From contig MU008196.1 of NCBI GenBank assembly GCA_010909165.1, forward strand, positions 1 to 64,000: 64,000 nt of DNA. The letters run 5' to 3'. The notes under the pieces were generated by a model. That model made no database searches, was not told the DNA's origin, and was given only the letters and a program-made list of their open reading frames with translations. Each line of letters starts with the position of its first letter. Positions within the stretch are counted from its first letter, which is position 1. The translations under genes were made by a program, and so were the position numbers. Of this stretch, positions 2,021-29,760 are shown one piece after another. The stretch is from Anthoceros angustus. Lineage: Eukaryota; Plantae; Anthocerotophyta.

Positions 2021-2029
2021 TACTCACCC

Positions 2030-2753
2030 TACCGGAGTGTGTGTAGCTCACTTGCCAGTCTCACAGCCCTACCAACCTTTGACTTTTCCTTGTCGTTTAC
2101 CGTTCTTCTTTCTCAGGATATCCTCTCGCTTCCTAACAATATTTACAACTCCATTTCAAGATTCTGAAATTTTCCGCATGCTCCTCTTCAATCGCTTCTT
2201 AGCCAAAAAAATCAAACTTCGTTCTTTGGCTCTTTGAATGGTTGCCCAAACTTTCGTTCCACATACTCCCCACCTCACCGCTTGCGTCGCAAACAACTTT
2301 GGTCGAGGTACTTTTGACTTTCCACCCGCTCACTCTAGGGCAATACTTCCAGCATGAGTTGCACAGATCCATTTCGTACATCTGCGACTACCTCGTAAGG
2401 TCCCATCCATCTTAGCCTAAGCTTCCTGGAAAGTCTAGGTACCGACTATCATATAGAAGAACCAAATCCCGCCCACGATAGCCTCCTGCTTCCTCAACCT
2501 CCCATCATGCCTGCTTCCGGGTTCCACAGATGAGTTTCCTCTAAAGCATCCTCCTCGTTCCTCCTTCTATGAAGCATTCTAGTCTAGCTACGGCTACTTC
2601 TTCTGGTCATGCGTTCATCCTCCATGATCCTCGTAGGTACTTCAAATTCCACGCATCACAGTGCCATGCCATCGTTAGATAATAAGGGTCTTCTTGGTGG
2701 TTACCTTCTCCGTCTTGTAAGCCCACGTCTGCAACAGCATCCCAATCATCGTA
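2030..2753 (-). pseudogene. pol: Gypsy (Athila/Tat-like) integrase C-terminus and 3' UTR, interrupted at ~2753
   Basis: Minus-strand translation LLYDSRYLDFPG-L-LRWMGPYEVV (GPY/F module, ~2350-2460) and DDWDA at ~2735-2750. Confidence 0.8.
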
Positions 2754-3238
2754 AAGTCGCGGCCTCAGGCCTTGATTAGTTTTCGGGGTAGTGCGTGAAT
2801 TTTAGAGAGAATCGGCCTTTTGGCCATTATTTTACCAGATAGTAAAATTCATTACACTATAGTAGAAAACATGCCAAGTGGGGTGGATATGATCTACCAT
2901 CAAGGTGGAAAAGCGAGCACTAGAGTAGAAAACATGACGACCAAGTGAATACCGGGTCTAGAAGCTCATTCTAGAAATCCCACCAAAATCGCTAATCACA
3001 AAAACATTTTACATTAAATAATATTCATGCGGATCCGGGATATACAAAAACCAACAAAGAACCCTTTTCTTTGCGAGTTTCCTGTATATCCGTATGAAAT
3101 AATTCAACTAATGAAGAGTAAATACCATTATAGAGTGAACTCGCTTCAACAAAACCTACAAACAAAACCAAAATTAGCACCCAAACCGTAATTACGTGCT
3201 ACTAGTAAACACTAAAAATAAAAACATTGATACTCACC

Positions 3239-6200: not shown

Positions 6201-6424
6201 CATCCTTCTTGGATGAGAAGTGCCTTGGCGGTTTAGGAATGCCTTTTTGGAACTAAATATGTTCCTTCACCAAGACACCATCAACTTTACCATCATCCTG
6301 CGTGGATGAGTTGCGATGTGGAAACGGTGACTTGACACGTTGTCTAGTGTACGCTTATGACTTGACCGGGGACCCTTGCTTCTTTCCCGGTCCAAGGCCC
6401 GGTGGGTTTCCTTTTAGGTGCCAT
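3239..6424 (-). pseudogene. Multi-exon Crypton/DUF3504-type tyrosine recombinase, copy 1 (frameshifted as assembled)
   Basis: ATG 6424 (MAPKRKP). GT-AG introns at 5639-5559, 5321-5236 and 4616-4544, among others. Exons give EDIPYKDLNL-RYLF-QVRIKD, CAYFCMTRFGVRGGEELHNLLIRDFSF (Arg codon 5199-5201), VYEERFKNY, WYAKLRVSK, GLVGYYTNKS, (TG)H and R|YDRS (Tyr codon 4540-4542). TAA at 3239-3241. Confidence 0.85.
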
Positions 6425-7569
6425 CGCAAGCCAGACATTAGAGTGGACAAGGAACACAACATCCTAAAGAACAAACAAAACCACAACAAAAACACACTTA
6501 CGTGGTGTTGAACTTCAAATACGAACTTCTGTGAAGGGTCTAACAGATGATTATAAAACAATTTAAGGCGAAGGGGGTGTGGGGATAGCACAGAACATTC
6601 ATTGAATCTACACATTGTCAAATTAGATCCCTCCACTTTATGTTAGTGAGCAAACTCCTTTCCCAAAAGTACCCACATACTGCCTGTAATTAGACCCTTT
6701 TGCCGAATAATATCAAAAACAAACAAAAATGTTAGGCGGTGCACAACATGAAAGCATACTAGGAGATTCAATGGACCGTCAGGCGAAGGTTATCACGATT
6801 CACGCAGACGGACCAGTCGAGCGTTGGAGCCAACCCTTCACACGATAGCAGCAATGCCTACACACACAATTTGATGGATTAGATAACTTAAAAGTGGTAG
6901 CAAAGCAAACTTGACAAGACGAAGGCATATGCACAACATATCAAAAACCGATCATCAGGTCTAAACGTAAAGTTGACATACCAGATCAAGGGTTACACCA
7001 TGGACAAATTTCCTCCCGACAAAGCTTGTCTGCACCAAAACAAAACAAATAAGAACAAGAATGCACGCTTTGCAGGCTTAAAACAGACAAACGATACAGA
7101 AGCATTACGGGCTGTGATGCAAAGGATGATAAATGTAAAATACAAGACAAATGAAAACTGCTGTAACAGTTCAGACACCCTGTTTACCAACACTGTCTTC
7201 CGACTAGAAAATCTTGAAATTACTTCCTGCGTCAAACGAACAAAAGACAATGAAAAACTAATACAAGCTACTGAAGAGAATCTAACTGACAGCATTTTTC
7301 AAAAGCAGCATCTTCATAAAGACAGAGTACTAAACAAAGTTCATTGGCGTACCAAACAAAATCCCGAAATATGTCCGCCACATAGACCGAAACATGACTG
7401 CATCAAAAACAGCGAGAAGGTAAGAACACACGAGGAAAGCAAACCACATCCGGGAAAAATACACTTTGACCTTAGTCACAAACACATATTAAGACGTGAA
7501 AACAAAAACACAAAGAATTACGATGGCGAAGCAAATCAAGTCGGACTAAGTGAGAGAAAAAATAGGCGT

Positions 7570-8330
7570 GACAAAACAAAACCAAGCCATGGAACCAGAC
7601 GGCATCAAGCGAGAGACAAAAAGTCACTTCAAACAAAACGAACAAGTTATAGCAGCGTTTACAGAAGGTGAAAACAAGCAGTGAAGGTGAAAGAATCGCA
7701 CATGAAACAGACCTAAACAAAACTTAGCTTGGAAGTAACAACAGAAGCCCGAACCTCTCAGACAAAGACAGATACTGCTGGTCGATTTCAAAAAAAACGA
7801 ACAGACACAATCGACGATGGCGTCAACAGCAAACAAGTCAACAAGAGAGTACAGCAAACGAAATCAGCAAGAACCAAGCTTATACAGAAAGTTAAAGTTT
7901 AAAACGACACACATAACAGAACGTCACAGCAACAAAAACAAGAACACACAGAGGTCATCGAGACACAGACAAGAAAACAAGCAGAGATGCAAACTGATAC
8001 CAAGCCATGACCACACGACAACAAGCGAACAGATAAAAGGTCACTTCCAACAATCAAACAGAAACGACCGTTAAGAGAAGGTCAAAAAAGAACGCAAGAA
8101 TCACTCATGGAATAGACATGACAACCTTCAACTAGATGCAACAATAGAATGAAGGCTCAAAAACGCAGACAGATACTGCTTGTCGTTTTCACAAAAACGA
8201 AGCAGACTCCATCGACGCTAGCATCAACAGCAAACAAAATAAACAAAGACAACCTACAGCAACCAGAAATCAGCTAGCAACGGAGCTATCGGCGAACGTA
8301 AACCAAATACCATCATAGCAAAGTAGTCAT
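7570..8330. repeat. Degenerate ~410 bp tandem repeat in the A/C-rich leader
   Basis: ACAGATACTGCT-GTCG...ATCGACG...CAACAGCAAACAA at ~7768 and ~8169. CCAAGCCATG...GTCACTTC at ~7581 and ~7999. Confidence 0.6.
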
Positions 8331-8659
8331 TCCCTATGATTTAGGAATCGCGCACAGCAAAAAACAACATCGGAAGCAGACGAGATCAGAAAAAAGCCGC
8401 GATACAAAAAGCCACCGGTAAACAGGAGGTAGAAAAACACTTAAACCGAACAGACAGAACAAAAACCGCACCGACCATACACCGGAGCGCCAGAACACCA
8501 CCGGCGTAGCAAAACAACACCAAAACCGCACAAAACAACAAAAGAAAGAAACAATAGACGAGAAACAACAGAAAATAACGTAAGCGCAAATGGACAGCGA
8601 CTTCAAAGAAGACAGAGGGCCTTAACCTTTAAACGACAGAAACCTCAGCCTCCGGTGCC

Positions 8660-8950
8660 AATCAACCTTGGCCTTCGGACTAAGCAACAAGCTTAACCTG
8701 ACGGGCAAGGACACCGTGACCTTCGGACCAGGCAAACCCTTGGCCTTCGAAAGAACCAACAGACCAGCAACACCTTGGCCTTCGAAACAATCTATACAGA
8801 GACCTTGGCCTTTGAACGAAGGCTGGAAAGGCCTTAGCCTTTCGAAAGGACCTGAAAAACGCATTGGCCTGAAAACTTAAACCAAAGCCTAGAAGCCTAG
8901 AACACCTTGGCCTTCAAAGAAGGCTACAAAGCCTAAGCCTTGGACCGAGC
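8660..8950. repeat. Cluster of ~9 CCTTGGCCTTCG-like motifs at ~30 bp spacing
   Basis: Copies near 8666, 8718, 8738, 8773, 8804, 8831, 8863, 8904 and 8938. Confidence 0.75.
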
Positions 8951-9167
8951 CAAATCACTTTGGCTGCGAAACTAGAACTAGACAACTCATGGACTTGAGC
9001 AAGCACGGAAGCATGCACAAGGCATAGGCCATGGCCCTCACAACACCGGACACGGGCCTTGAAGCAGAGGAGGAAGACCTTTGAGACTAAAGGCGAACAA
9101 GCCGAGGCCCGGACGGGCCACCTCGGCCTCACAGGAATGCAAAAGACCTCCCGCTTTGGAGAAGCCA

Positions 9168-9189
9168 TTTATATATAGGCAAACCCTAA
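9168..9189 (-). promoter_or_regulatory. Candidate TATA box plus telobox for recombinase copy 1
   Basis: Minus-strand CCTATATATAAA (9168-9179) next to AAACCCTAA (9181-9189). The same arrangement occurs at 17276-17299 in copy 2. Confidence 0.5.
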
Positions 9190-9467
9190 ACACTCTCCCT
9201 CGGCGCGCGTTCTCTCTCTACCAAAGCTGATTTGAATTAAAACCTAAGATTAGGGGATTCCAAACCCTCGTACGTGGGTTCGCCATTCACGCCAGCCTGT
9301 TCAACCAAACCTAGGTTCTTGATTCCAAACCTAGCCTAACCGCACCAAACCTAATCTCCGAACCCCGATGCGTGAATAACTGAACCTACTGTTCAACCAC
9401 GGTGCCACGCACGACCTCGAACCATCTAGAAGTTTCGTTTCGGTATAGCGGCAACATGGCGCTTCTT

Positions 9468-10225
9468 TCGATGGGCAGGCGCGCACAATCATGTCGTTGT
9501 AGTATGGAGTCCGTTCCCAAGAGAATGATAGCTCCGTTTGCAGCGATTCTCACCTTTCTTGGTCCACTTCACCGCACTCAATCTTCGTTTACCACTATTT
9601 ATAACGTTCACGAGCACGCGGACGCCTGCGGGATGTGGCGCGGCGGAAATAAGTCGCTAGGGTTTGGGTGGGACCCACCTCGGTGTCAAGCAACTACCCT
9701 AGTGAGAGCCACCGCCGTGGAATAAGATTTGCGGTCGTGGAATAAGAGCCGTGGTAGTTAGACAAGTCGGGGTAGTAGTGGTGAGTAGATAGGTAAGAGG
9801 AGTAGCAGTAAGTCTTGACTTAGGTGAAGGTCAAGAGATAGAAGTTAGGCCTCTTGGCACAAACCATTCCCTTGGGAGCGAATCCTAAGCCTACAACGAC
9901 ATTGAGGGCGAATGTGGACCTCACTGTCCCCGGACACAACCACACTCCACACCAGCCCAAATTTAGCTCTTGCAAGCCGCGCAAACCGCACTTTAGCCCT
10001 CCTTGGATACCGCCACCGAGGCAGGCAACCCTAATGGATCATTCCAAAATCCTAATCCTATCTAAATGCCTATTTTCCTATGCCCGCATCCCTAATTAAT
10101 CGCCTAATTACTCTATACATTTATTCCCACAGGGCATATATAGTGGATATCCTATTCTAATTTCCTGAGATCGCTACAAGTGGTAGTCTGCTACCCCGTG
10201 GTAGTCCGCTCGCCACCATCGTGTG
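9468..10225. mobile_element. Nested Gypsy LTR fragments: family C LTR end (~9468-9700), family B-like LTR end (~9700-9950), family A LTR start (~9950-10225)
   Basis: GCGCGCACAATC..GTCGTTGTAGT matches 53970-54005 and the reverse complement of 32345-32375. ACCATTCCCTTGGG..GTGGACCTC matches 34711-34769. 10050-10220 matches 1845-2010. Confidence 0.6.
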
Positions 10226-10229
10226 GCAG

Positions 10230-11177
10230 CCTCACGGCAGGCCACCACCTCGGGCCTTCCCCGCCCAGCCTTAGGGTCATTTTGACCCGCTTTACCCCTG
10301 GGATATCCTCTCACCTATCAATATCCTACAACCTGGCTCCAAGCAAATTCTCAACATGTCCCTCTTCAATCGTTTTCATAAAAAATTAAATTAGCTCATC
10401 CTCTCTGGCTCTTTTGGACGTTGCCCAAACTTTCAGTCCATTCTCCTCTCACCGCTTAAGGCCCTGCAAACAACATGTATCTCGGGTTGAAGGTACTTTA
10501 ACCTTCCACCCATTCACCGTGGTCGGGCGAGTATCTAATACTCGAGTTGCAGGATCCATTCTCGACACCGCCACCACCGTAAGGTCCCATCCATCTCACC
10601 TAAGCTTCTGGAAGTCCAGTACCGACTATCAGAGAAGAACTAAATCGGCTGATAGCCTCCCCTCGCCTTACCTTCCATCGTGGCCTTTTCCGAGTTCTTG
10701 AATGGCCGAGTCTCCTCTAAGCATCTTCCAAGGCTCTTCCCCGCCTATGAAGATTCTAACCTAGCTATCGCTATCCCCACAACATCGCGTCTCCTCCATG
10801 ATCCCGTAGGTAGGTACTAAATTCCACAGCATCACATGGACATGCCATACGATAATAAGGGTCTTCGGTCATTTTAAGGTCCCGAAGCCCATGGTGTCAG
10901 ATGCAATTTAGCATCCCAATCATACATGCTCATGATTACCTTGGTGAGGATTGTGCATAGCAACGTGCCTTCTCCCACAATCCGTGCCTTGGGGTTGTGT
11001 CGTCATGGCGGATATTGAAGTAGGTGGTTAGGACTCAACGAGAGTTGAGGAAATCGCCCCCGTCACGACCAACTCTAAAGGACACCCATACCGTTATGAT
11101 GTTCTCGAACTTCGCCATCGCGGCGCGGCCGTCCTTCTTGTTGCTTCTCAACCCACCATTGGTGCTAACAATCCGTA
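10230..11177 (-). pseudogene. pol: Second Gypsy family A integrase fragment (core end plus GPY/F), interrupted at 11177
   Basis: 10936-11177 is colinear with integrase 25339-25610. 10230-10920 is colinear with 2030-2750. Confidence 0.8.
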
Positions 11178-11666
11178 AAGTCGCGCCTGCGTCTGGGCCT
11201 CGACGCTGGTTTTTTCGCAGCAGTGAATTTTTAGAGAGAATCGCCTTTGGCCATTATTTTACACAAGATAGTAAAATTCATTACAATATAGTAGAAAACA
11301 TGCCAAGTGGGGTGAATATGATCTACCATCAAGGTGGAAAACAGAGCACTAGAGTAGAAAACATGACGACCAAGTGAATACCAAAGGCCTAGTAGAAGCT
11401 CATTCTAGAATCCCACCAAAATCGCTAATCAAAAACATTTGTTAAATAATATTCATGCGATCCGTGGATATACAAAACCAACAAAGAACCCTTTTCTTTG
11501 CGAGTTTCCTGATATCCGTAATTGCATGAAAAATTCAACTAATGAAGAGTAAATGATAGAGTGAACTCGCTTCAACAAGAAACCTACAAACAAAACCAAA
11601 ATTAGCACCCAAACCGTAATTACGCTGCTACTAGTAAACACTAAAATAAAAACATTGATACTCACC

Positions 11667-14600
11667 TTATTTTGGGAAATTTACTGTACAATTATACAGA
11701 TTGAAATGTAATTTCACGACCACTTGGCTTGATTGGTACTTGTACAAGATTATCATAATTGGCAACCAATTGATGAAGCGAGGACTTGAAATTGACCATC
11801 TTCCGCAAGGTCACAACCTAAAACAACACAACCATTAATTTTCAATCTAGTAAACTGATTAATAAAAGCATAAAGCTTACCGATCCCGACGGATTTTCGC
11901 AGATAGCAAATATCTCGAGGCACATCCTTCCTCTGTTGTCTTTCCCACGTAATCTCCGAACCTCTTGCTGCTCTTTTCCGCTGCCGCTTTCTTGATGCTT
12001 AATATGCTCTTGTCTCCTCTCGCATTTCTCCGCCTCGAATCTCAAGGGCTTTCTTTGCTTAGAGACTCGTAATTCAACCGCCTCTGCCTCTCTATAAGTG
12101 CCTCCAAATCCTTTTGTCACTGAAACTCCATTTCGCTTCAATTTGTCATTCTCCAATTCCGTTGGAGATCTGGCAAGTCAAAGCCACTTACATTTCCATT
12201 TGCAACACAGGCAATATCCAGGTGCTACCACAGCCACATTTTGTCCCCGGGTTAACTGATGATCGATCACACTCACTCGCACAATGCCCTCCAACAGAGG
12301 GCCATCGCATCCACTTCCCTGTATCAATGTTGAAATGAGGGATGAACTTACACTAGTCGAAGGATTCACCGCCAAGAAGAACACAATCGAAACTCCAAAA
12401 TGAATGAAAACAACAAAAACAACAAAGAATCAACCTTGTCAACATATGGAATTTTAGTAGAACGTTGGTCCGCTAGTCCATCCGGATGCTGCCAACTTTT
12501 CAAGGTGCCTTAAAAACAAGAACCAAGATGATTAAAAAACTAACATGGCACTACAACAAAGCAACTTCACAATACCAACTGAACTTCAAGACCACATGGT
12601 GCGAAAAACTTAGTTCCCAACATTGTTCGTGGGTCCGCTTTCATGATGAATAACAGAGTGGCCAGAGGGGACAAAAACAAGTCGACATGATTTTGACACA
12701 AGTCCCTACATACTTGATACAAATCTCAAACACTTACATTACTAACGTGTTGCACTTGACCGATCTTGTCGACTAAAATACTATTTCGGAGTTACATTCA
12801 ACATTGACGGAAGAACACCCTTAAATCATCCCCGCATCCGATTGAGTTCTTCATTTAAAAGCTCGATAAGATCGCTCACCGTGAACAAGAACTCTTCTGC
12901 TTTGCTTGACCGAACTCCATATCGAAAACATATGAGAACGTTAGAACGCATACAAGACTCAAATGTCACAAGCTTTCACAACATATTACCTTGAAAATAA
13001 AGATCCGTTTTATGGCGGTCCACACTTCTCCCAAAGATCGAGGGCACCGAGCCATCGTCAAACGCGTGTAATCATCGTTACACGGCAGCTCTTATTGGTG
13101 TAGTAGCCAACAAGCCCACCGCTCACCATGGTCTTCATAAATCTTGACAACATTCCTTTTGAAACACGAAGTTTTGCATACCAAGCGAAAAAACAACAAG
13201 CTTAGTAAATAAAACCACAAAACTCAAGCCCAATAAACCAAAAACTTACATTGGATCTTGGGTTATCAATGGTTGAATTGAAGAGAAACCCCGAATTGAC
13301 AAATTCTTGTCATGTGCACCACTTGGGAGAGTGATCAAATGACTTTAAAGGTTTCGACGTCCTTTCAGAGATCTTGACCTTTGACTAAAATGCTCACTCG
13401 GTAGTTCTTCATATCCACTTTGTAATTTTTGAATGCCGCTTCATACCGCAAATGAAGACGAGCTCAATACTGACATCAAAACATCAAACAAACAAGAAAC
13501 AAAAGACTACACCATTGAACAAAAGGTCCTTTGAATCGATGCAAATGAGAAGTCCCTAATGAGGTTATGTAACTCTTCACCACCTCGAACCCCAAACTGG
13601 TCATGCAAAAATATGCACACCGCAAACAATAAGCATAAGGGCTCGTGTTTAAGAGACCATAAATGAACAATCAAAGTGCACCCCAAAACCAACAATATTA
13701 CCTTTTGAGCCCAAATGAGCATTGATGATCTCGTGTGAAAGAATCCGCTCATCATCAAATCAACTTCACCTCTTTTCGACATGACACAATCCCAAGGTCC
13801 TTGCTGATTTTCATGGACGCAACCAACTCACCCATGGAAAATTCCATGAAACATGTTGATCACGGAACATCGAACCAAGCCGGCTTTGGTTGTGATGCAC
13901 TTCCTTGTTAAACCTTAAACCCACGAAAGAAAGACATCACCGCAAGTGAAGATCAAGAATCGTCATGTGAAAGGAAAGTCGAACTATCAAAATCAACAAG
14001 TAAGAAAACATCACTACTTACGCTTCGGAGAAAATCTCTGTTGTCCTTGATTCGAACTTGATGGAAAAAGGGTATCGAATAAGATTTAGATCCTTGTAAG
14101 GAATATCCTCATTAGCAGTATCCCATCCCCTGACCCCACTCACTTTCATAAAGGCCCTGAGACGACTTCGACACCAGTTATTCCGCCGCTTTGACCTATC
14201 CTCCCACCACTCAAAGCATCATTCACAGCTCCCTCGACGACGGTCAAATCCTCGCCTCCGAAAATTTCTTCATCATCAATTTCCTCCATGGTCATCTCAT
14301 CTGGACCAAAGACACTTTAGCCTCTCAAACATATCGAGCACTTCTTGATCGTGATGACCTGTGGTCGTGAACCACAACAGTATGGAAATCGCCCACCAGA
14401 AAGCATCTGCTCAACCACAGACACAAATCTCTAGACTCTAGACAGGCTTTGGCGGTCACAACCATGGGGATCGTTATCAAGAAATCATTCTCCCCACAAC
14501 CGGACCCCTCTCTATAATCGGGACATAGTTAGTAATCTCGCAAGAGGACCTTCAACCAATGCCACAGTCGAGTGTCCACCCTTCTTCTCTGCACAAACTC

Positions 14601-14849
14601 ACCGCACGCCGAGCATCCTTCTTGGATGAGAAGTGCCTTGGCGGTTTAGGAATGCCTTTTTGGAACTAAATATGTTCCTTCACTGTGCACCAAGACACCA
14701 TCAACTTTACCATCATCCCGCAGGATGAGTTGCGGTGGAGGACCCGACTTGACACGCTGTCTAGTGTACGGCTTAGCCATGACTTCGGCCAGGGACCCTT
14801 GCTTCTTTCCCGGTCCAGCAGGCCCAGTGGGTTTCCTTTTGGGTGCCAT
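11667..14849 (-). pseudogene. Multi-exon Crypton/DUF3504-type tyrosine recombinase, copy 2 (frameshifted as assembled)
   Basis: ATG 14849 directly after an acceptor (TTTTCTTTGCAG|ATG). FGVRGGEELHNL (Arg 13585-13587), WYAKLRVSKGMLSRFMKTMVSGGLVGYYTNKSCRVTMITR (~13165-13045), coiled-coil exon ~12150-11880, C-terminal FNLYNCTVNFPK*, TAA at 11667-11669. Confidence 0.85.
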
Positions 14850-17275
14850 CTGCAAAGAAAAGCACCAGTGTGATCAAAACACAAAAAACATTTGAACAAG
14901 TTAATGAACTTGCAAACCAATATGAAAAGACTTACATGGAGGTGAATGCTTTCAAATGAGAACCTGCTGAAGGGTCTAAAAGTTGATTATACCACAATCG
15001 AAAAGAAGGAGGGTGTGGAGATATTGCGAGACATCCTTTGATCTATACATTGTTAGATTTTGCGATCCCTCCATTTTAAGTTAGAGAGAAACTTCCATTT
15101 TAACAAACCCCACATACTTCAAACACTCTTTTCCAACAATATTGATAGATGTTAGCCCGACACAACAGCCTTGATCACCGACATCAAGAAACACAGAATT
15201 TCACACTGTGCAAATAGTTATCCCGAGACACGATGACAAATTAGAATGTTGGAAGAGACCACACGATGACAAATTTCCTACAATGAAACGAGTTAGTGAG
15301 GTTAGATATTAATGTCTCAAGAATAAACGACAAAAGGAAAGGTAAACATCTCTTACTAAAATCAATTCACTAAGAATTTTCCGGCGGGTCCGCAACAAAG
15401 GCCAAAAGAGTTAACAACAAACCAAGATCGAAACAAACATAGCAACAAGAAAGAACCACGATTGGACCCGCAACACCAACCATGACCAAGAGATACAAAC
15501 CACGAAACCCGACATAATGCAACAAACAAGAACAAAAAGTCGACATAAAACACGAAACTAAACATACATCAAATTAGATAAACGAAAGTGACTAACAAAC
15601 GTCACGGACATCAGCACAAAGACAATTACGCGAATAAAAGACGACAAAAGTGATCTACCTTCCAAATGCGGATAAACAAGAAGCACACACATCAAGAAGA
15701 AACGATAACAAGACAAAACCAAACAAAATAAGCGAACAGAACAACAACCGAGACAAATACCTTTAAAATGTTTTGCCCAAAGGCGATGCATGAACAAGCT
15801 CTTCCGCATGAAAATAAGAGCATAAGTACAAGTAATGTAACACAACCAAAGTTAAGACGCAACACTTTGAGAGACAAGCACAAAAAGCTGCGAGATTACA
15901 AATCAAGTAACGCAACGCTGATGCCGTATCAGAGATAAGAACAATGTTTATACTTCACAAAGAAGAACAAATAAGACAATACAGCAAAGATACATCATAA
16001 ACAAGCACGTGAGAAAACGAGATAAACACCAACAAATGACTTATTGAACAAGACATAGTATATATAGAAACAGCAGATGATGAAAACACAAGACACAAGA
16101 ACAAGACATTACACGATCAAGACACGAAAGCCTTGAACGTATAACGACGCACAACGACAAGCGATAAACACATTAACATGTAAGACACACAAAGACAAGC
16201 AGAAGGAGCAACATATTCACAAAGCAAAACAAAGACTCACACAAGACAACGAAGGATGATGAGGTACAAAGCAACAACCAAAAAGAGCAAAATGAGAACA
16301 CGAGCAAAGAAAGACACCAAAAAGCACACAAAACGTCATGACATAAACAAAGAAGGCAAGTGAGAACAAACGATGAACACTTATAGTCAAACGCATGACA
16401 TAAGACACGCCTTAAAACAACGACAACGAAACCCTGTCGAACAAAAACAACAATAAAAGAAAACAAAAGAAGACCTTGGCAACGAAAGCATAAAGCAACA
16501 TAAAAGAACGCGAACAACGCCGAAGCAATGACATGAAGAACAAAAACAGAATCAACGACATGATGCAAACACAACAAGACGCGAAAGAAACGCTAAGACA
16601 TCTAAAACAAGCTACACAACTAGAACGCGAGCAGGCACAAAAGTGAGAAACCAACCGCGACAAAAGCACAAGAAACAACAAAAACAAACAACGAAAAAAA
16701 ACACAGAGAAAGAAGGGAAGAGGAAACACAGAGGGAATGACGCCAAGGTCACAAGCCCAAAACCCTTGGCCTCGACAAAAACAACAATGAAAGAAACCAA
16801 TAACAAAGAAGACCTTGAGAAAGCATAAAGCGTAAACATAAAAGGAAACCACTAAGGAACAACGAAACCAGAGCTCCTCGGCCGAAAGCACATCAAAATA
16901 CCTTGAAACGGACTGACCAACTACAGAGACCGCAAGCTAACAAGACGAAAATCACCACATGATGCAAACACCACAAGACGGGCGAAAAGAAACGCTAAGG
17001 CACCAAAAAGGGAGCTAGGAGCGGGGACCTTAGAAGCGCCTTGACGCAAGGCACCTTGGCCTGGGACCGCAACAAGTGAGAAACCAACTTGGCCCTCGGA
17101 CAAAAGCGATCAATGAAACTTGAAATGAAACAACCTTGGAAATCGGACAAACGGTGCGAGGGACATAGAGAAAAGAGGGAGTAGAGAAGGGAGACGCAGA
17201 GAGAGCGAGAGAAACACCTGGAAGGTCCCAAGCCCCAAAAGCACCAGCAAAAGACCAAAAAGGTCCGTGAACCCG

Positions 17276-17556
17276 CTTATATAGGCCCCAAAACCCTAAC
17301 CCTTCTCTCCGTCCCGCCACTCTCTCTCTAACCAAATTTGAAAATACCAAACCTACTCTACCGAGCCGGACAAACCAACCTAGGTCGCCATTCGTCGCCG
17401 CCTCCTCAACCAACCTAGTCACCTTGTTCCAAACCTAGCCATGCAACACCTAACCTAATTTCCGAACCTCTTCGAGGTGGCGAAACGAACTCCAATGAAC
17501 ACCGCCACGCACACGGCTCTTCAAGCATCCGAACCCTAATTCAAGTCTATTTAAGG
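17276..17556. promoter_or_regulatory. Candidate bidirectional promoter (duplicated at ~21546-21826)
   Basis: Minus-strand CCTATATAAG (17276-17285) with telobox (17291-17299) and plus-strand CTATTTAAGG (17547-17556). T-rich leaders run outward on opposite strands. Confidence 0.45.
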
Positions 17557-19034
17557 AGCACTACTACTTTCATCGCCCACCACGCCTGCTAGGGTCGCCC
17601 CTTCTACGCCCCGCTAGCACGCCGCCAGTGTGTCACTCGCCCCACAGCCTCGCTAGTTCTCTTACGCTAGTTCCATCCTCCGCCAGCCGGTTCCGCTCCT
17701 ACCACGCCCTACCGCCCACCACGCCGACAGGCTGCCTCCTTCTCCACGCCCCTTGCTCACCTCGCAGAAGGTGCCTTCACCTATGAACGCCCTCGCCCAC
17801 CACGCCAACAGCCGCTCTTTTCTCAGTAGTGAATAGCGAGTCTGCCTTCCGCTCAGAGCCCGAACGCCTCGGATCAACACTCCGACTGCTTGGCTTCCTC
17901 CGCCTTTGGTTCCAGCGACGTATAAGCAATACCTCATCATCGCCTCGAGGTGAAGAGCACGTGAAGACGCATTGGCAACAAAGGTGAATTACCGCCCGGT
18001 TTTGTTTTGCCTTTGAAATTGTTTGTCGTGCTTTGTGCCTATGCTCATGCTTTGATCTACCGAGGGATACCACACAACGCCAAGGTTCCAACAGCGTAAG
18101 AGTTGGACTCGCAAGAACGAGTGCACATTTTCCCGCCGACGGCTTCGTTTCACTCACCGTCCCGCTTAAGCTCGCGCCAAGGAGACAAAAGAGGTCTCTT
18201 GGTCCTCCGGTACGACGACAAACACTCTTACGTCGGTCGCGCCTTTTTATTCTTTTGCCGCTAACACCCGGCTGCCTCGCGCACTTGCCTCCGCCTTTGC
18301 TTGTGAATAGCTTATCGCTAGTTTGCTTGCAAAAGCCTTTCTTACCTTGAATGTCGCAGAAAACCGAGACTCCTCTACGCCTTCGAGTCCAACACGCAAG
18401 AAGACATCGAACGGTAACAAGCCTCTGTAGCGAACTTATCTTTCGCTTTCGCTTTCAAAGTCGCTACATCGACCAAGAAACGCTAGCAAGTCGATAGTTC
18501 TCTCGACCGCTTGACGCTTTCTCGCTTAACTGCCTCTTTATTCTCGCTTAATCTCGGTTAATCATCCGGACGTAACCTGCTCAAGAGTGACTCAAGACGC
18601 CACGCGCAGCCACTGCATGCAAGAGCTACTAACGCCGTCTCAACCTATAGAGGTCATGCTCGATGCCTTTTCCTTAGGCATACAATTGTCTTAAACCTCG
18701 TGTTCAAAATGTAGCTAGAGTCGATTGGTCATTCAGCAATGTTTGAGTCAACATCGCTCGTGACAACAACTTGTCGAGTCAACTTTGCGGGTATTTATAG
18801 GCATGCCAACATGCGCAAGCGTGGCATGCATCGCGCAGCATTTCTTGATATTGGATCACCCGACGAAGTTCAAAAGTCCGTAATCATATTTTATTTCTAA
18901 CCGTGTTTTTCCTAACTATTCGAAGTCGAAATTGCATGTCCGTATCTTAACGGAGACGCATGCCAGCTTGAGCGTAAGTCATATCCGTTTTGTGTTGCCG
19001 TAGTATATTTTATCAGCTGAAAGTACGCGGCATG

Positions 19035-19124
19035 ACACTGCCTAGTGTACGGCTTAGCCATGACTTCGGCCAGGACCCTTGCTTCTTTCCGGTCCAGGCC
19101 CATGGGTTTCCTTTTGGGTGCCAT
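19035..19124 (-). pseudogene. 5' stub of the recombinase gene created by the tandem duplication
   Basis: MAPKRKP start at 19124, truncated at the duplication junction ~19034. Confidence 0.8.
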
Positions 19125-22100
19125 CTCGCAAAGAAAAGCACGTGTGATCAAAACACAAAAACATTTGAACAAGTTAATGAACTTGCAAACCAATATGAAA
19201 AGACTTACATGGAGGTGAATGCTTTCAAATGAGAACTCTGAAGGGTCTAAAAGTTGATTATACCACAATCGAAAAGAAGGAGGGTGTGGAGATATTGCGA
19301 GACATCCTTTGATCTATACATTGTTAGATTTTGCGATCCCTCCATTTTAAGTTAGAGAGAAACTTCCATTTTAACAAACCCCACATACTTCAAACACTCT
19401 TTTCCAACAATATTGATAGATGTTAGCCCGACACAACAGCCTTGATCACCGACATCAAGAAACACAGAATTTCACACTGTGCAAATAGTTATCCCGAGAC
19501 ACGATGACAAATTAGAATGTTGGAAGAGACCACACGATGACAAATTTCCTACAATGAAACGAGTTAGTGAGGTTAGATATTAATGTCTCAAGAATAAACG
19601 ACAAAGGAAAGGGTAAACATCTCTTACTAAAATCAATTCACTAAGAATTTTCCGGCGGGTCCGCAACAAAGGCCAAAAGAGTTAACAACAAACCAAGATC
19701 GAAACAAACATAGCAACAAGAAAGAACCACGATTGGACCCGCAACACCAACCATGACCAAGAGATACAAACCACGAAACCCGACATAATGCAACAAACAA
19801 GAACAAAAAGTCGACATAAAACACGAAACTAAACATACATCAAATTAGATAAACGAAAGTGACTAACAAACGTCACGGACATCAGCACAAAGACAATTAC
19901 GCGAATAAAAGACGACAAAAGTGATCTACCTTCCAAATGCGGATAAACAAGAAGCACACACATCAAGAAGAAACGATAACAAGACAAAACCAAACAAAAT
20001 AAGCGAACAGAACAACAACCGAGACAAATACCTTTAAAATGTTTTGCCCAAAGGCGATGCATGAACAAGCTCTTCCGCATGAAAAATAAGAGCATAAGTA
20101 CAAGTAATGTAACACAACCAAAGTTAAGACGCAACACTTTGAGAGACAAGCACAAAAAGCTGCGAGATTACAAATCAAGTAACGCAACGCTGATGCCGTA
20201 TCAGAGATAAGAACAATGTTTATACTTCACAAAGAAGAACAAATAAGACAATACAGCAAAGATACATCATAAACAAGCACGTGAGAAAACGAGATAAACA
20301 CCAACAAATGACTTATTGAACAAGACATAGTATATATAGAAACAGCAGATGATGAAAACACAAGACACAAGAACAAGACATTACACGATCAAGACACGAA
20401 AGCCTTGAACGTATAACGACGCACAACGACAAGCGATAAACACATTAACATGTAAGACACACAAAGACAAGCAGAAGGAGCAACATATTCACAAAGCAAA
20501 ACAAAGACTCACACAAGACAACGAAGGATGATGAGGTACAAAGCAACAACCAAAAAGAGCAAAATGAGAACACGAGCAAAGAAAGACACCAAAAAGCACA
20601 CAAAACGTCATGACATAAACAAAGAAGGCAAGTGAGAACAAACGATGAACACTTATAGTCAAACGCATGACATAAGACACGCCTTAAAACAACGACAACG
20701 AAACCCTGTCGAACAAAACAACAATAAAAGAAAACAAAAGAAGACCTTGGCAACGAAAGCATAAAGCAACATAAAAGAACGCGAACAACGCCGAAGCAAT
20801 GACATGAAGAACAAAAACAGAATCAACGACATGATGCAAACACAACAAGACGCGAAAGAAACGCTAAGACATCTAAAACAAGCTACACAACTAGAACGCG
20901 AGCAGGCACAAAAGTGAGAAACCAACCGCGACAAAAGCACAAGAAACAAACAAAACAAACAACGAAAAAAAACACAGAGAAAGAAGGGAAGAGGAAACAC
21001 AGAGGGAATGACGCCAAGGTCACAAGCCCAAAACCCTTGGCCTCGACAAAACAACAATGAAAGAAACCAATAACAAAGAAGACCTTGAGAAAGCATAAAG
21101 CGTAAACATAAAAGGAAACCACTAAGGAACAACGAAACCAGAGCTCCTCGGCCGAAAGCACATCAAAATACCTTGAAACGGACTGACCAACTACAGAGAC
21201 CGCAAGCTAACAAGACGAAAATCACCACATGATGCAAACACCACAAGACGGGCGAAAAGAAACGCTAAGGCACCAAAAAGGGAGCTAGGAGCGGGGACCT
21301 TAGAAGCGCCTTGACGCAAGGCACCTTGGCCTGGGACCGCAACAAGTGAGAAACCAACTTGGCCCTCGGACAAAAGCGATCAATGAAACTTGAAATGAAA
21401 CAACCTTGGAAATCGGACAAACGGTGCGAGGGACATAGAGAAAAGAGGGAGTAGAGAAGGGAGACGCAGAGAGAGCGAGAGAAACACCTGGAAGGTCCCA
21501 AGCCCCAAAAGCACCAGCAAAAGACCAAAAAGGTCCGTGAACCCGCTTATATAGGCCCCAAAACCCTAACCCTTCTCTCCGTCCCGCCACTCTCTCTCTA
21601 ACCAAATTTGAAAATACCAAACCTACTCTACCGAGCCGGACAAACCAACCTAGGTCGCCATTCGTCGCCGCCTCCTCAACCAACCTAGTCACCTTGTTCC
21701 AAACCTAGCCATGCAACACCTAACCTAATTTCCGAACCTCTTCGAGGTGGCGAAACGAACTCCAATGAACACCGCCACGCACACGGCTCTTCAAGCATCC
21801 GAACCCTAATTCAAGTCTATTTAAGGAGCACTACTACTTTCATCGCCCACCACGCCTGCTAGGGTCGCCCCTTCTACGCCCCGCTAGCACGCCGCCAGTG
21901 TGTCACTCGCCCCACAGCCTCGCTAGTTCTCTTACGCTAGTTCCATCCTCCGCCAGCCGGTTCCGCTCCTACCACGCCCTACCGCCCACCACGCCGACAG
22001 GCTGCCTCCTTCTCCACGCCCCTTGCTCACCTCGCAGAAGGTGCCTTCACCTATGAACGCCCTCGCCCACCACGCCAACAGCCGCTCTTTTCTCAGTAGT

Positions 22101-23407
22101 GAATAGCGAGTCTGCCTTCCGCTCAGAGCCCGAACGCCTCGGATCAACACTCCGACTGCTTGGCTTCCTCCGCCTTTGGTTCCAGCGACGTATAAGCAAT
22201 ACCTCATCATCGCCTCGAGGTGAAGAGCACGTGAAGACGCATTGGCAACAAAGGTGAATTACCGCCCGGTTTTGTTTTGCCTTTGAAATTGTTTGTCGTG
22301 CTTTGTGCCTATGCTCATGCTTTGATCTACCGAGGGATACCACACAACGCCAAGGTTCCAACAGCGTAAGAGTTGGACTCGCAAGAACGAGTGCACATTT
22401 TCCCGCCGACGGCTTCGTTTCACTCACCGTCCCGCTTAAGCTCGCGCCAAGGAGACAAAAGAGGTCTCTTGGTCCTCCGGTACGACGACAAACACTCTTA
22501 CGTCGGTCGCGCCTTTTTATTCTTTTGCCGCTAACACCCGGCTGCCTCGCGCACTTGCCTCCGCCTTTGCTTGTGAATAGCTTATCGCTAGTTTGCTTGC
22601 AAAAGCCTTTCTTACCTTGAATGTCGCAGAAAACCGAGACTCCTCTACGCCTTCGAGTCCAACACGCAAGAAGACATCGAACGGTAACAAGCCTCTGTAG
22701 CGAACTTATCTTTCGCTTTCGCTTTCAAAGTCGCTACATCGACCAAGAAACGCTAGCAAGTCGATAGTTCTCTCGACCGCTTGACGCTTTCTCGCTTAAC
22801 TGCCTCTTTATTCTCGCTTAATCTCGGTTAATCATCCGGACGTAACCTGCTCAAGAGTGACTCAAGACGCCACGCGCAGCCACTGCATGCAAGAGCTACT
22901 AACGCCGTCTCAACCTATAGAGGTCATGCTCGATGCCTTTTCCTTAGGCATACAATTGTCTTAAACCTCGTGTTCAAAATGTAGCTAGAGTCGATTGGTC
23001 ATTCAGCAATGTTTGAGTCAACATCGCTCGTGACAACAACTTGTCGAGTCAACTTTGCGGGTATTTATAGGCATGCCAACATGCGCAAGCGTGGCATGCA
23101 TCGCGCAGCATTTCTTGATATTGGATCACCCGACGAAGTTCAAAAGTCCGTAATCATATTTTATTTCTAACCGTGTTTTTCCTAACTATTCGAAGTCGAA
23201 ATTGCATGTCCGTATCTTAACGGAGACGCATGCCAGCTTGAGCGTAAGTCATATCCGTTTTGTGTTGCCGTAGTATATTTTATCAGCTGAAAGTACGCGG
23301 CATGCACAACATGCCGCACTGTGCAACAAAGAACTTACGAAGAGTCGCAAGCACGTGCATTTTAAAAGTTCAAGTTATTCATTGGCCCGACTTGCTTTTA
23401 TTGCGTA

Positions 23408-25150
23408 ATGGCATCCGAGAATGAGAGCAACGATGAAATGGTCGACATCCAAGAAGGTAATGATCATTTCGCCACTACCAAATCCATTTTGGTTGACTCA
23501 TGGCTAAAATGATTTTCCGTAAAGTGACGACAATAGTAAAGACCCAACAAACCTTAACCGGGCGATCAAACAACAATGTTCCCACCCATGGGGATCCGGG
23601 ATATGATGACAGAAGTTCAAATCCTCTCATTGAGATACGAAAGATAGTTGAGAAAGGTAATACATTTCAATTAATCAATTGAATCTCCGTGAACATTTCT
23701 AACTCGATATCTTTGAGAGACCGAGCACACTATGTTCACATCAATGGACAAAAGGACTTGCAGTGCCCGCCAATTGGAAAAAATTAAAAGGTAAAGACTT
23801 GGTTCGCAACTTTCAGACATAACGATATCCGCAACTCACTTTAGTTGTATATGGTTACAGGATATTAAGAAGAATCTCCAACAACAATTAGAGTTGGAAA
23901 CAATGACTGGTCCGGAGGTTTAATGGACAACGATCTCAATTCACGATTTTGGAGGTAAACAACTAACACTTGTATTATATGTATTTGTTTACAGTAATAA
24001 ATACTAATTATTTGTTTACAAAAGTCAAGTGCAGCAAAGGAAATTAAGGAGAAAATTGAAGCAATGGATGATAAAATCAACAACACGCCCATCTTTCATC
24101 GTAATTGCTATTGTATGTTTGTAATTAATAATTAGTATATTTGTAAGTAGTATATAACTTAACATCTTTTTTCAAAGGACAAAAGAGGAAAAAGACGAGT
24201 CAGAAGATAATGCACCAACGTATGGACCATCGAAAGAATTTGCCGATTTTGGAAAATGGATGGATAACTTTCAGTATCCACAAGTCTTCCAAGATTTTAA
24301 AAATAGATATGTTCCCATTTGGGAACATAGCCTCAAAGATCCAGCGCAGCCGATCTGCAATGAAGATGGGTCGACAGCAACCCTAGAGCAGTACATGGAG
24401 ATCCAGAAAAGTAAGTGTTATCGGTTTATATTGTTCTTAGTATAGTTTACTGAATCAGTTTATGTAGTACTAATGAAATTTGTGTTTTGGTAATGTAGAA
24501 ATATCAGCCATTGAAAATAAGGAGCTAAAACCACGACTTGTTGACTCGATGGAAGATCCGAAACTACAAAAACATTCAAAAGGTTAGTTCAGAATAATTT
24601 ATTATGTAAACAAGGAAAATTGATATTCGTATTTTCAAATATGTAAATTCTAACGTTGATACCTCTTGCGTAACGCCCAATCACATTTCCGTAGTGTGGG
24701 AAATCTTCACAGCCATTGCCTCACATTAGTGAGAAAGGTATTTACCGAGCAAGATCTTCTTCGACTTGAAATGGAGGTAAAATATTAACTCCTTTTTGTT
24801 TTGTTTGTAGTTATCAAGAATCAAAAGGAGTTGTTTGCACTATTTGAGGTTAGTATATCATATTTACAGTGGTGAAATTATATATGTAATATTTGACATT
24901 TACCATTGCCGTAAATATTCCCGCTTGACGAAATTTTAAAATGATTAACTTTCTATCCGGACCGTATAATGAACAAAGAAAGAAGTATTATTCAAGACAA
25001 AGCATCCAAATCGCTGTGTACACCCCTTCAACGCCAGAAGAAAGTTAGAAAGAGAAATGCCAAAACCTGAAAAGACAAACGAAAGCGTAGTGAAAGTGAA
25101 AACTCGCGGTAAAACTCAAGTGCGAAGGTGAAAACTCGAAGAGAGAGAAA
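23408..25150 (+). pseudogene. Intron-rich gene of unknown function (ORF2 of the candidate element)
   Basis: ATG 23408 MASENESNDEMVDIQE|gtaatg. Short exons are separated by AT-rich ~70-110 bp GT-AG introns, e.g. GQKEEKDESEDNAPTYGPSKEFADFGKWMDNFQYPQVFQDFKNRYVPIWEHSLKDP...MEIQK|gtaagt and HCLTLVRKVFTEQDLLRLEME|gtaaaa. The 3' end is uncertain. Confidence 0.6.
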
Positions 25151-25326
25151 AAGACTTCTAGCTTGGGTGCACAAGGCAACAATTTAAGATAGCAGACCTC
25201 GCCTCCGGTTAAGTCGAGGCAGGCGTCTGCCCCGCCTACCGCCCCTTACGCTGGGAACGCGTCGACGGCCTAGAACGGTCTCGCCTAACGGCCTCGACGT
25301 TCTCGTGACGCCCTCCAGCGTCCTAA

Positions 25327-27236
25327 TATCACGATAGCTACCTTGGTGAGGATTGTGCACAAAGAACCCATTTGTCTTCTCACAATCCATTCGCTTTGGG
25401 GTTGTAGGGGTCGTCTTTCGATGCCGAATGTTGAAATAGGTGGTTAGGGACTCAATGACAGAGTTGAGGAAATGTGTCCCCCGGTCACTAACCAACTCCA
25501 AAGGACACCCGTACCTGGTTATGATATTCTCGAATAAAAATTTTGCTACTGCAGGTGCGTCGTCCTTCCTCGTTGCTTCAGCCTCCACCATCTTCGTGCA
25601 ATAATCCGTAGCCACCAAAATGTACTGCTTCCTCGTCCATTGCGTTGGTGGTTTGATTGGTCCTACGAAATCGATTCCCCACTTCTCGAACGGTGCTAAC
25701 GGTAAGATGTAGGTAAGAGGCCATTGTGTCGACAACGTAGGCCGCCCAACCCTCTGACACGCATCACACCTCCGAGTGAACTCCCACACATCCTTTTGCA
25801 TCGTAGCCCACCAGAACCCTGCATTCAAAATCTTCTTAACGGTCACCTGTACCGAATAGTGTCCACCTGCCTCCTCTGCATGTAGCGCCTCCGTGACGAG
25901 TGCAGCCTCCTCAGCTTCGAGACACCGTCGGATCTTCTCGTCCGGCCCAAGCTTGTACAGGATGCCTTCCCTTAGGCAATAGGGTGCGGCTTTATGGAGA
26001 AAAACAGCCCGCCCTTCTCTGGACAAACCATCCGGCATGATTCCATGCTCCAGGAACTTGCGCACTTCACCGTCCAACAAATATCTTGGGCATGAACGCC
26101 CCTCACGTTCTAATCTCCTCCTTCCAGGTCGACTACGTCGCCTCCTGCTAGGTCGCCCGTTAGTAGCCCCAGATGGAGTTGATCTATCCACAAATCTATT
26201 TTCTCCCTGCTTACCCATGCTGCAAGTCTCTTCCTGCAGCCCGTTTGCATGCTCTTCCTCTATTAACGGACTGATTTCGTCCATTCCTGCTGGTCTAGCC
26301 TCGTTTCTAGGTCCAGCTCGTGTTCCCATGGCGACCTCCTCGCCTTGTTGCACCTCCAGGGTCGAATTTTGATTAATTGCCCACAGATCTGCCAACTCTC
26401 CCTTCTGCAATTTCTGCTCAAACTTTTCATGGATCGCATCTCCTTCTTCGCCCCTTGGTGTGTTCACCTCCCTAGGGCCTTCTCCTCCTCGCGGCCCTAT
26501 GGCGCCTGGCTTCTGACCTCGCCAAGTGTGGCTCTTCTCGTCGCTCAAAAACAGTGTTCTCATGTCCGTTTTTGCTTCTTCCTTTTGCCAACGCGTGGCC
26601 TCCATTTGCAGCCCTCCTGACTGCTCACCCTTGAGGAGAATTCCAGCCTCCTCCTCGCGCCCATGCTGGCGCCCTCTTATCCTCTCTCGGATTTCCAGAT
26701 TGTCCTGCTGCAACTTTTCCTGCACAACGTTCCCTTTTTGCTCATTTGGCCTCTCTGCTAGCGACAAGACTTGCTGATCAATTCTTAGGCCGTCTATAAC
26801 ATGCTTACGTCCTCCCCCTTCGACCCGGGCCGTGGCAACCAACTCGTCAGAAATCCTATCCGTGGCTTCAAGTCGCTTCCGCCAGACGAGAAATGAAATC
26901 AGCATTCCGATGCTGCTTTCCTGGCCTAGTTTCTACGTCGTAGTCAAATTCTTGCAGCAGTAGTACCCATCTGGCAATCCTTCCTGACAAATCTGGCTTG
27001 TTGACAAGATACTTCAACGCAAAATGATCTACATGAAACGTCACCTTGCAAGGCGATAGTGTCTAAACTTTTACTGAGTAAATGATACCAAGACCCTCCC
27101 GCTCCGTGGTTGAGTAGTTCTTTCAAAGATCCGTGAGCGTCTACCCGCATAGAAAATCGGATGATCCCGTTTCTTCTCGTCCTTCTGACTCAAGATGGTC
27201 CCAATAGCATAAGCGGACACATCTAACACCATAAAC
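25327..27236 (-). pseudogene. pol: Gypsy (Athila/Tat-like) RNase H, long linker and integrase (HHCC zinc finger plus DDE core)
   Basis: LDVSAYAIGTILSQ..NYSTTEREGLGIIY..YLVNKPDLSGRIARWVLLLQEFDY..NADFISRL (27236-26880). GGHY..ILNAGFWWATMQKDV..CDACQR, PFEKWGIDFVGPIKP, YILVATDY and LELVSDRGTHF in ORF 25184-26905. Confidence 0.95.
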
Positions 27237-28061
27237 CTTCAAGAGGGGGAATTTACATGATGGGGGTTTTCTTGAAAATATGCGCCAAAGGGGGTTACAT
27301 GGGTCTCAAAGCATTTAATAGCATGTTTTGGTGAAAGAACCACAAAAAACAGGTGTCCCATACACGTTGTCCCCTTTTACAATATGGGTACACGCCGTGG
27401 AAGGGTGCTCAAATCCTTTACCCATATGATGAAGGCAAATTAAGACCCACCGTCGACTAATGCCGGGAAAGGATGCTGAACCTAGATTTGGGTCCGCTAG
27501 AAGAAAGTACGGTTGGCATGCAAAACCCATAGTCTCGCAAATTGCTTTTGATGTCAAGGGTTTGGCAAAGGGTAGAGGTCATGCGATCAAAAACCGACCG
27601 TATGCTTGGCGGCCTTGTTGAGCAGGGAGGCCGGGTCGGCCGCGCCTGCCTTGTCTATGGAGGTCACACCGATTCTGCCTTCTCCGCAGCATCACAAATT
27701 GAAGAACAAACACCACCTACGGATCGAAGATGGTTGGGATGATCGCAACAACGCCCTATCTATCATCCTCGACAAATTTGTCCAGCTATGGACAACACGC
27801 CACTATAATCTTGGGGCAAAGATAACCGCCCAAACACATACTTAATTTATTGGTGTTGCAAACCACATATACGGATACGGTATTGTATTGCATTGAGGTG
27901 GTAATGGACCAAAAGCCAAACATGATTCACGCTACCGGCTTACCCTAACAAAGGCTCGGACAAGGAGTAGGAATTTAGACCGGTGAAGCTAGAACCCTAT
28001 ATTTATCTCAGATGCGGGAACCATTGCCTCCTCTCCCAATTCCTTCTCCATGGAAGCACGT

Positions 28062-29572: not shown

Positions 29573-29760
29573 ACCTCGTTTGGTGTGGATTTAGGTACCA
29601 GCTAGGTCCGGTAATTCTTAACGGGTAATTTGAATTCTTAATGAGTAATTTTACTTTAACAAATAATTTTAATTCTCAATGATTAATTTTATATTTAATA
29701 AATATAGTATATAATTAATCTGATATTTAGTAAACAGTGGAGTACACTTAACGCGGCTTC

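Follow-up and report, generated by a model that had tools for sequence, protein, structure and literature searches.

The DNA considered here, referred to below as the window, is a stretch of 64,000 nucleotides from Anthoceros angustus (Anthocerotophyta), positions 1 to 64,000 of contig MU008196.1 in assembly GCA_010909165.1, and consists of repeat-rich DNA. The only long open frame in its first 30 kb lies at 25187-26932 on the minus strand (582 amino acids), and Pfam recognises in it an Integrase_H2C2 zinc-binding domain (PF17921) and an rve core (PF00665), which in a motif alignment are followed by a ...TNG...LTK...DWD...LWAYRT region, as expected of a Ty3/Gypsy retrotransposon. A word search with the integrase part returned 215 relatives at E <= 1e-10, the best of them being liverwort Gypsy polyproteins with ~55-73% identity from Riccia sorocarpa, Calypogeia fissa, Marchantia polymorpha and Riccia fluitans. 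The integrase of this copy, Gypsy A, is interrupted, and between its two parts lie two copies, E1 and E2, of the element that is the subject of this report, together with part of a second Gypsy copy, Gypsy B. The order along the plus strand is the 3' part of Gypsy A, the left 6.6 kb of E1, the putative 3' long terminal repeat (LTR) of Gypsy B with the tail of its integrase, E2 and the 5' part of Gypsy A; the point at which E1 interrupts Gypsy A is termed p1 and that at which E2 interrupts Gypsy B is termed p2 (Table 1).

Read on the minus strand, the Gypsy A integrase breaks off at 25327 and picks up again at 2753. Joining the two flanks gives a single frame, SLCTILTKV AIVI/YD DWDAV, in which the junction falls between the codons ATA and TAC. 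The spacing from K-x to (D/N)W(D/N/E) is exactly six residues in 91 of the 92 relatives in which the motif could be located, and the rejoined Gypsy A therefore has the normal length for its family, with no codon lost or added. The C-terminal continuation of the integrase below 2753 was placed at 2468-2356 by tblastn of the relatives, and the joined flanks also align. The flanks at 2753 and 25327 meet exactly and stay in frame, without any target duplication; Gypsy A is restored by deleting 2754-25326 (22,573 bp). The break and its junction bases, the in-frame join with the usual six residues before DW and the needlessness of a target duplication had all been claimed in a preliminary description of the locus, and the sequence read directly bears them out, the agreement in frame being a local one of ~20 codons; the comparison with Gypsy relatives likewise finds no residue missing or added at the rejoined site in 91 of the 92. 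Its central claim, that removal of 11178-25326 restores the integrase, is wrong, because the left flank at 11178 belongs to Gypsy B, which is ~74% identical to Gypsy A and is interrupted at a different site; removal of that interval alone joins Gypsy B at p2 to Gypsy A at p1 and leaves a repeat of ~284 nt.

Self-comparison of the window identifies Gypsy B as a second integrase fragment (9983-11177) covering sequence on either side of the first insertion point, with 70-75% identity between 1780-2693 and 9983-10866 and 74% identity between 10937-11177 and 25339-25610. The site p1 is empty in Gypsy B, at 10924/10925, where the read-through is LCTILTKV-IMSMY-DWDAKL, Gypsy B having lost one codon of its own there. 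Conversely, Gypsy B is interrupted at p2 (11177/11178), which lies further upstream in the integrase than p1, and this site is empty in Gypsy A at 25610/25611 (ataatccgta/gccacc), within the LVA/TDY codons of the rve core. Since each site is empty in the other Gypsy copy, the two insertions are independent.

The bases at the three junctions, from left to right and with a slash marking the junction, are ...gcatcccaatcatcgta/aagtcgcggcc at 2753/2754 (...catcgta/aagtcgc), ...aacaatccgta/aagtcgcgcc at 11177/11178 (...atccgta/aagtcgc) and ...ccagcgtcctaa/tatcacgatagctacc at 25326/25327 (...gcgtcctaa/tatcacg). Both left junctions thus read CGTA/AAGTCGCG, at two different positions of the integrase; beginning with CGTAAAGTCGCG, E1 and E2 have the same sequence, and the flanks to the left of CGTA are unrelated. 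That CGTA is host sequence follows from the empty sites, which read CCGTA/G in Gypsy A at p2 and CATA/C in Gypsy B at p1, the latter showing a CpG-to-CpA change. The chance that two random positions of the integrase share four nucleotides is 0.0046, and a preference for CGTA is therefore likely. The junctions support the ends AAGTCGC... and ...GCGTCCTAA given in the preliminary description, with a margin of one base provided that the host neither gained nor lost any, the ambiguity arising because a2753 equals a25326 (a 1-bp overlap, A). An inverted-repeat search found no terminal inverted repeats at the ends of the element, and self-BLAST within it revealed neither LTRs nor long terminal direct repeats, the internal tandem duplication described below being the only match. 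Taken with the reciprocal empty sites, these junctions make it very probable that a mobile element possessing neither terminal inverted repeats nor a target duplication was inserted precisely, and in nested fashion, at this locus.

The left ends of E1 and E2 also share their subterminal sequence, the first 250 nt being ~95% identical. The pair of direct repeats GTAGAAAACATG(N0-4)CCAAGTG found in E2 recurs in E1 at 2862-2947, and the pattern has four matches in the window against 0.4 expected, all four at the two left ends. These repeats are candidate protein-binding sites. A search for the same DNA pattern in metagenomes gave seven loci, all of them chance matches of 21-33 nt. If the element were to be excised as a circle, the hypothetical junction (25304-25326 joined to 11178-11193) would read GCGTC-CTAAAA-GTCGC, six A-rich base pairs flanked by an imperfect inverted repeat of 5 bp; this has the general shape of the core site of a tyrosine recombinase, a likeness that may be due to chance.

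Table 1. Features of the two Gypsy copies and the two copies of the inserted element, in window coordinates.
Feature	Position	Strand	Remarks
Gypsy A integrase, C-terminal part	1780..2753	-	continues 25327 (YDDWDAV...); heavily frameshifted; translations, tblastn
E1, element copy 1, left two thirds (6.6 kb)	2754..9366	+	starts AAGTCGCGG; cut off at ~9366
E1 recombinase-like remnant	3240..6450 (outer limits nominal)	-	many small exons; stop-to-stop pieces, motifs
Putative 3' LTR of Gypsy B	9367..9951 (585 bp)	-	TG...CA on minus strand; adjoins end of E1 similarity
Gypsy B internal fragment, integrase from p2 (rve core) to end	9952..11177	-	70-75% identity to Gypsy A 1780-2753 and 25339-25610
E2, element copy 2	11178..25326	+	14,149 bp as assembled; ends AAGTCGCGCC... 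and ...CCAGCGTCCTAA
Left subterminal direct repeats GTAGAAAACATG(N0-4)CCAAGTG	11289..11376	+	two copies ~63 nt apart
E2 recombinase-like remnant	11667..14849	-	three-frame reading, GT/AG-like exon borders; 3' limit by analogy with E1
Tandem duplication within E2	14750..23308	+	units 14750-19032 and 19033-23308; 4.28 kb, 99.5% identical
A-rich strand-asymmetric spacer	15100..19030	+	between two divergent genes; almost unalignable between E1 and E2
Candidate open reading frame 2 (ORF2)	23408..24860	+	small exons, GT/AG-like borders (MASENESNDEMVDIQE...); largest exon 24179-24412
Gypsy A RNase H and integrase N-terminal part and core	25327..27226	-	Pfam rve, Integrase_H2C2; tblastn of relatives

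The left parts of the two element copies (2795-6681 and 11223-15118) are 84% identical in the self-comparison, and their colinearity continues weakly through an A-rich part (9280-9364 against 17385-17468) until the similarity ends at ~9366, E2 coordinate ~17470, where the LTR-like 585 bp begin. Over 2754-6700 and 11178-15140 they differ by 389 substitutions and 150 indel runs in 3.9 kb, the small indels, mostly of 1-3 bp, occurring about once every 26 bp and the transition/transversion ratio being ~1.1. Identity is uneven along the alignment, at 96-97% in the blocks 3132-3512 and 5254-5450 and 84-87% elsewhere. This pattern of indels and blocks suggests that the repeats were noisily assembled, that the neighbouring copies have undergone gene conversion, or both.

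The length of the 14.1-kb interval occupied by E2 is due to an internal tandem duplication of 4.28 kb, for which the self-comparison match is 14750-19037 against 19033-23308; without it the element is ~9.87 kb long. The ~10 kb of the preliminary description is accordingly close to the unduplicated length, and the duplication, which brings the assembled length to 14,149 bp, had gone unmentioned. The duplicated unit holds the first exon of the recombinase-like gene (second copy at 19104-19124) and the whole of the A-rich spacer, and the two units differ by seven mismatches and 23 gap columns, mostly within 14755-14966; the duplication is either very recent or an artefact of assembly. Tandem Repeats Finder reported no tandem arrays. 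The spacer has a composition of 36% A, 18% T, 27% C and 19% G and gave no Pfam match in any of its pieces. It appears to be diverging fast (15100-19030; 6700-9360 in E1), although the copies are otherwise ~90% alike, and on the minus strand its T-rich complement gives rise to long open frames that are spurious. No further copies of the recombinase or ORF2 regions were found by tblastx in the rest of the window, and no look-alike stretches in the other genomes compared.

Two candidate genes can be traced within the element, a recombinase-like gene on the minus strand and ORF2 on the plus strand. They are divergent, in keeping with the head-to-head arrangement proposed previously, the A-rich spacer of ~4.2 kb being what that proposal had left out. 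In E2 the recombinase-like gene begins with an ATG at 14849-14847 (MAPKRKP...). The motifs recognised in it are, in E1, FGVRGGEELHNL at 5175-5210, FKNYKVDMKNYRV at 5002-5040 and GYYTNKSC at 4695-4718, and in E2 FGVRGGEELHNL at 13561-13596, GYYTNKSCRVT at 13076-13108, GEVWTAIK at 13008-13031 and RYGVRSSKAEEF at 12889-12924. Along the minus strand RGGEEL is followed by FKNYK ~33 residues on, by KSCR ~125 on, and then by W ~20 on or G-x-RS ~28 on. Tyrosine recombinases such as Cre and XerD have the layout R...K...HxxR...H/W...Y, and the motifs match it in that they come in the same order and at approximately the same spacing. The motifs and their spacing by themselves thus suggest a tyrosine recombinase. 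In both copies this gene is full of stops and frameshifts, and ORF2 is also interrupted by stops; both copies of the element are read as dead.

On these grounds the element is, with moderate confidence, most likely a transposon of the Crypton type, driven by a tyrosine recombinase. Several observations weigh against this reading, or against the precision of the junctions on which it builds. The positions at which the His and the nucleophile Tyr would be expected read K and F in both copies, and the motif alignment to tyrosine recombinases may be wrong. Homology searches for the recombinase and ORF2 were made exon by exon with exons of 30-70 residues, and the recombinase pieces had no match in Pfam, PHROGs, PDB sequences or the ESM Atlas. 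A phmmer scan of 1.84 billion representatives with 4858-5166(-) gave no true match, a word search with 4324-4563(-) returned nothing, and a metagenome scan with 4858-5061(-) gave 306 pattern matches of which none was confirmed. The sole phmmer match (E = 5e-6), to a 2523-residue immunoglobulin (Ig)-repeat protein identified as He_PIG by Pfam, was spurious. At the junction itself, the 93 nt of Gypsy A upstream contain at least three frameshifts and the 450 nt downstream at least five, and the richness in indels, whether it stems from assembly or from decay, weakens any argument from reading frame. Furthermore, the left end is seen twice in the window (2754 and 11178) and the right end once, and the right third of the element has a single copy there.

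With 30-70 residues per exon, distant recombinases are out of reach in libraries of that size, and the blank exon searches are therefore weak evidence either way; the word search, moreover, sees only proteins of similar length, and its blanks are uninformative on full-length relatives. For the pieces of ORF2, the word search, Pfam and the Atlas yielded no relatives or families. Of the two-gene Crypton put forward in the preliminary description, the order and spacing of the motifs thus agree with it, and every homology search for the recombinase and ORF2 came back blank. Frameshifts abound near the junction in both Gypsy copies, and the in-frame argument consequently extends over only ~20 uninterrupted codons.

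Cryptons are DNA transposons, treated by Goodwin (2003) and by Kojima and Jurka (2011) and comprising the groups CryptonA, CryptonF, CryptonS and CryptonI; most of the elements described seem to be smaller than ~9.9 kb. The ends and targets of Cryptons are generally hard to fix. The present element shares with them the lack of terminal inverted repeats, LTRs and a classical target duplication, a very short identity between end and target, and one recombinase-like gene, sometimes accompanied by a second gene; its insertion is precise and, on paper, reversible. It differs from them in its length of ~9.9 kb, the many introns of its recombinase-like gene, a recombinase recognised from motifs alone, the 4-kb A-rich spacer, a second gene without relatives and its land-plant host. 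Terminal inverted repeats are absent from published Cryptons, in which nothing beyond short direct repeats or microhomology with the target is seen (PMC3212892, PMC13465315). In the abbreviation list of a figure legend, Kojima and Jurka (2011) give only Chlamydomonas under 'Plants' (PMC3212892), and our literature search found no paper describing Cryptons in land plants. A further likeness is to Glomhopper, the DUF3504-encoding CryptonA elements of Glomeromycota (PMC13465315), which also have intron-containing recombinase genes, occur as high-copy elements and have decayed and intact copies that are hard to separate; Glomhopper, however, is a fungal family, and the likeness is one of description, no sequence link having been tested for or found.

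Amongst the alternatives, the one that survives best is a variant of the Crypton-type interpretation in which only the positions of the ends differ. A crossover repeat of 3-6 bp (TAA or TC[G/C]TAA) would define the ends, as in classical Cryptons, the empty site would read ...CATCGTAATATCACG... and the in-frame join would result from a nearby 1-nt indel. Such a register is available at this locus, since a TAA (or TC[G/C]TAA) repeat stands at both ends and would leave one extra host base: the left junctions read TCGTAA/A and CCGTAA/A and the right one TCCTAA/T, an imperfect 6-bp direct repeat. Published Cryptons have terminal direct repeats of 4-6 bp (PMC3212892, PMC13465315), and the density of frameshifts around the junction would accommodate a further indel. 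In this register, however, DWD is out of frame with LTKV, whereas the 1-bp register yields the six-residue spacing of 91 of the 92 relatives without a further event being invoked; the empty p2 in Gypsy A, furthermore, reads TAG and not TAA. The crossover repeat is for these reasons regarded as unlikely. By a rough estimate the in-frame 1-bp register is clearly favoured over the TAA register, favoured and not proven because frameshifts are dense around the junction.

More doubtful still is a non-autonomous rolling-circle (HUH) transposon, whether Helitron-like or a Replitron, the latter group being known from liverworts, in which case the 'genes' of the element would be captured or unrelated. 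Its 3' end, CTAA, fits the CTRR rule of Helitrons, the host bases at p1 are A/T, a 5-bp stem (GACGC/GCGTC) stands just before the CTAA end, and both insertions have the same orientation and lack a target duplication. Non-seed plants contain Replitrons in abundance, with short direct terminal repeats and, in most cases, no target duplication (PMC10288648); short terminal repeats and orientation-specific insertion are points of likeness as well. The 5' end, however, is AAGTCGC at both left junctions and not TC, and the AAG cannot be assigned to the host, since the empty p2 lacks it and p1 would with it have seven residues in place of six. The hairpin, with its short stem, does not reach significance (z = -1.6), p2 is A/G in the empty relative, no stop-free piece of the element has a Pfam match to a Rep or a helicase, and the gene motifs fit a tyrosine recombinase.

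It would seem least likely of all that part of the structure, be it the duplication, the indels or the joining of E1, Gypsy B and E2, is an artefact of assembling repeats from noisy long reads. The duplicate units do differ mostly by indels of 1-3 bp clustered in 220 bp, E1 and E2 show about one indel per 26 bp at the transition/transversion ratio already given, and frameshifts cluster near the borders of repeats next to 700 nt of clean integrase; such artefacts may account for the tandem duplication and for much of the noise in indels. Set against this, the three junctions (2753/4, 11177/8 and 25326/7) are clear-cut and biologically sensible, the border of the putative LTR coincides with the end of E1, and the reciprocal empty sites are something that an artefact cannot explain. 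Gypsy A and Gypsy B differ by ~25-30%, and E1 and E2 by ~10%, and each pair must therefore be different copies and not reads of one. A DIRS/Ngaro retrotransposon is excluded by the lack of any reverse-transcriptase match in the element and of terminal repeats, a TA-duplicating transposon with terminal inverted repeats by the lack of inverted repeats and a frame that would be off by one, and a segmental duplication as the source of the two left halves by Gypsy flanks that lie at different integrase positions and by the empty p1 of Gypsy B.

The simplest history proposed for the nested structure is as follows. E1 would have entered Gypsy A directly after 5'-CGTA at p1, and Gypsy B would then have landed inside E1, at element coordinate ~6.3 kb. 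E2 would have entered the integrase of Gypsy B after another 5'-CGTA, at p2 and in the same orientation, after which the right parts of E2 and E1 would have recombined homologously, deleting the 5' half of Gypsy B and the middle of E1. The product would be a full-length hybrid, 11178-25326, with its right end abutting Gypsy A, a 4.28-kb piece of which was later tandemly duplicated or else mis-assembled. E2 as annotated here is thus probably an E2/E1 hybrid, a deletion between the right parts of two copies in the same orientation being the simplest way in which the left end of copy 2 could be joined to the end at 25326. The fusion resembles deletions of the solo-LTR type in being an unequal homologous recombination between copies of the same orientation; it differs in that the repeats are two 10-kb DNA elements ~10% apart and that the deletion includes half a Gypsy. 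The layout of the preliminary description, with the left part of copy 1, a Gypsy fragment and then copy 2, is matched by the colinearity of E1 and E2 up to ~9366 and the LTR-like 585 bp thereafter. Its scenario of a Gypsy insertion into copy 1 followed by recombination between right halves fares well as regards the nesting and the deletion. Entry of E2 after Gypsy B had landed, and not together with it as that scenario has it, seems the more likely order, because a Gypsy with 10 kb in its integrase would be a poor substrate for retrotransposition.

Movement of the element would on this basis involve an excised circle that recombines with short CGTA-like targets, the host gaining and losing nothing. 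In the window the footprint of excision can be read to the base within a protein motif that is conserved, four identical target bases recur at a second, independent insertion, and both insertions have reciprocal empty sites; these together allow concrete attL and attR sequences and a circle junction to be predicted. Their value is limited in that both copies read as dead and the homology searches for the recombinase were blank. Taken further, the element might represent a land-plant lineage of the Crypton type that is specific for CGTA, inserts in one orientation, prefers the pol genes of retrotransposons, has subterminal repeats that bind its recombinase and possibly originated in a Glomeromycota symbiont. 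This combined proposal is improbable as a whole, and horizontal transfer by way of the Glomeromycota that live in bryophyte thalli is pure speculation; if the proposal were true, the preference for pol genes would amount to a 'safe-haven' strategy.

Some further features concern the Gypsy copies and the remainder of the window. The frameshifts of Gypsy A are concentrated in the ~100 nt upstream (25327-25420) and the 450 nt downstream (2300-2753) of the insertion point, and the ~700 nt of integrase before the upstream cluster (25420-26100) form one clean frame. The reverse-transcriptase and protease parts of its relatives had no match upstream of the RNase H and integrase (27226-34000), and Gypsy A must therefore be truncated or interrupted again beyond ~27226. 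Rfam and tRNA scans of positions 1-30000 found nothing.

Finally, the stretch 9367-9951 has the appearance of a 3' LTR belonging to Gypsy B, its first 100 nt (9852-9951) holding a motif that is common to 34699-34798, 39095-39222 and 59108-59243 and ends ...CCACA. This motif of ~100 nt (...CTTGACACAAAACCATTCCCTTGGGATCGAATCCTAGGACTATAACGACATAGAGGG...CCACA) forms the end of four different repeats, at the same four locations, and, on the minus strand, probably represents the 5' end of LTRs from related Gypsy families; its GGGATCGAATCC part resembles the T-arm of a tRNA. More nested repeats are present elsewhere in the window, pairing 30312-31771 with 54317-55836 and 33064-33950 with 37625-38516.

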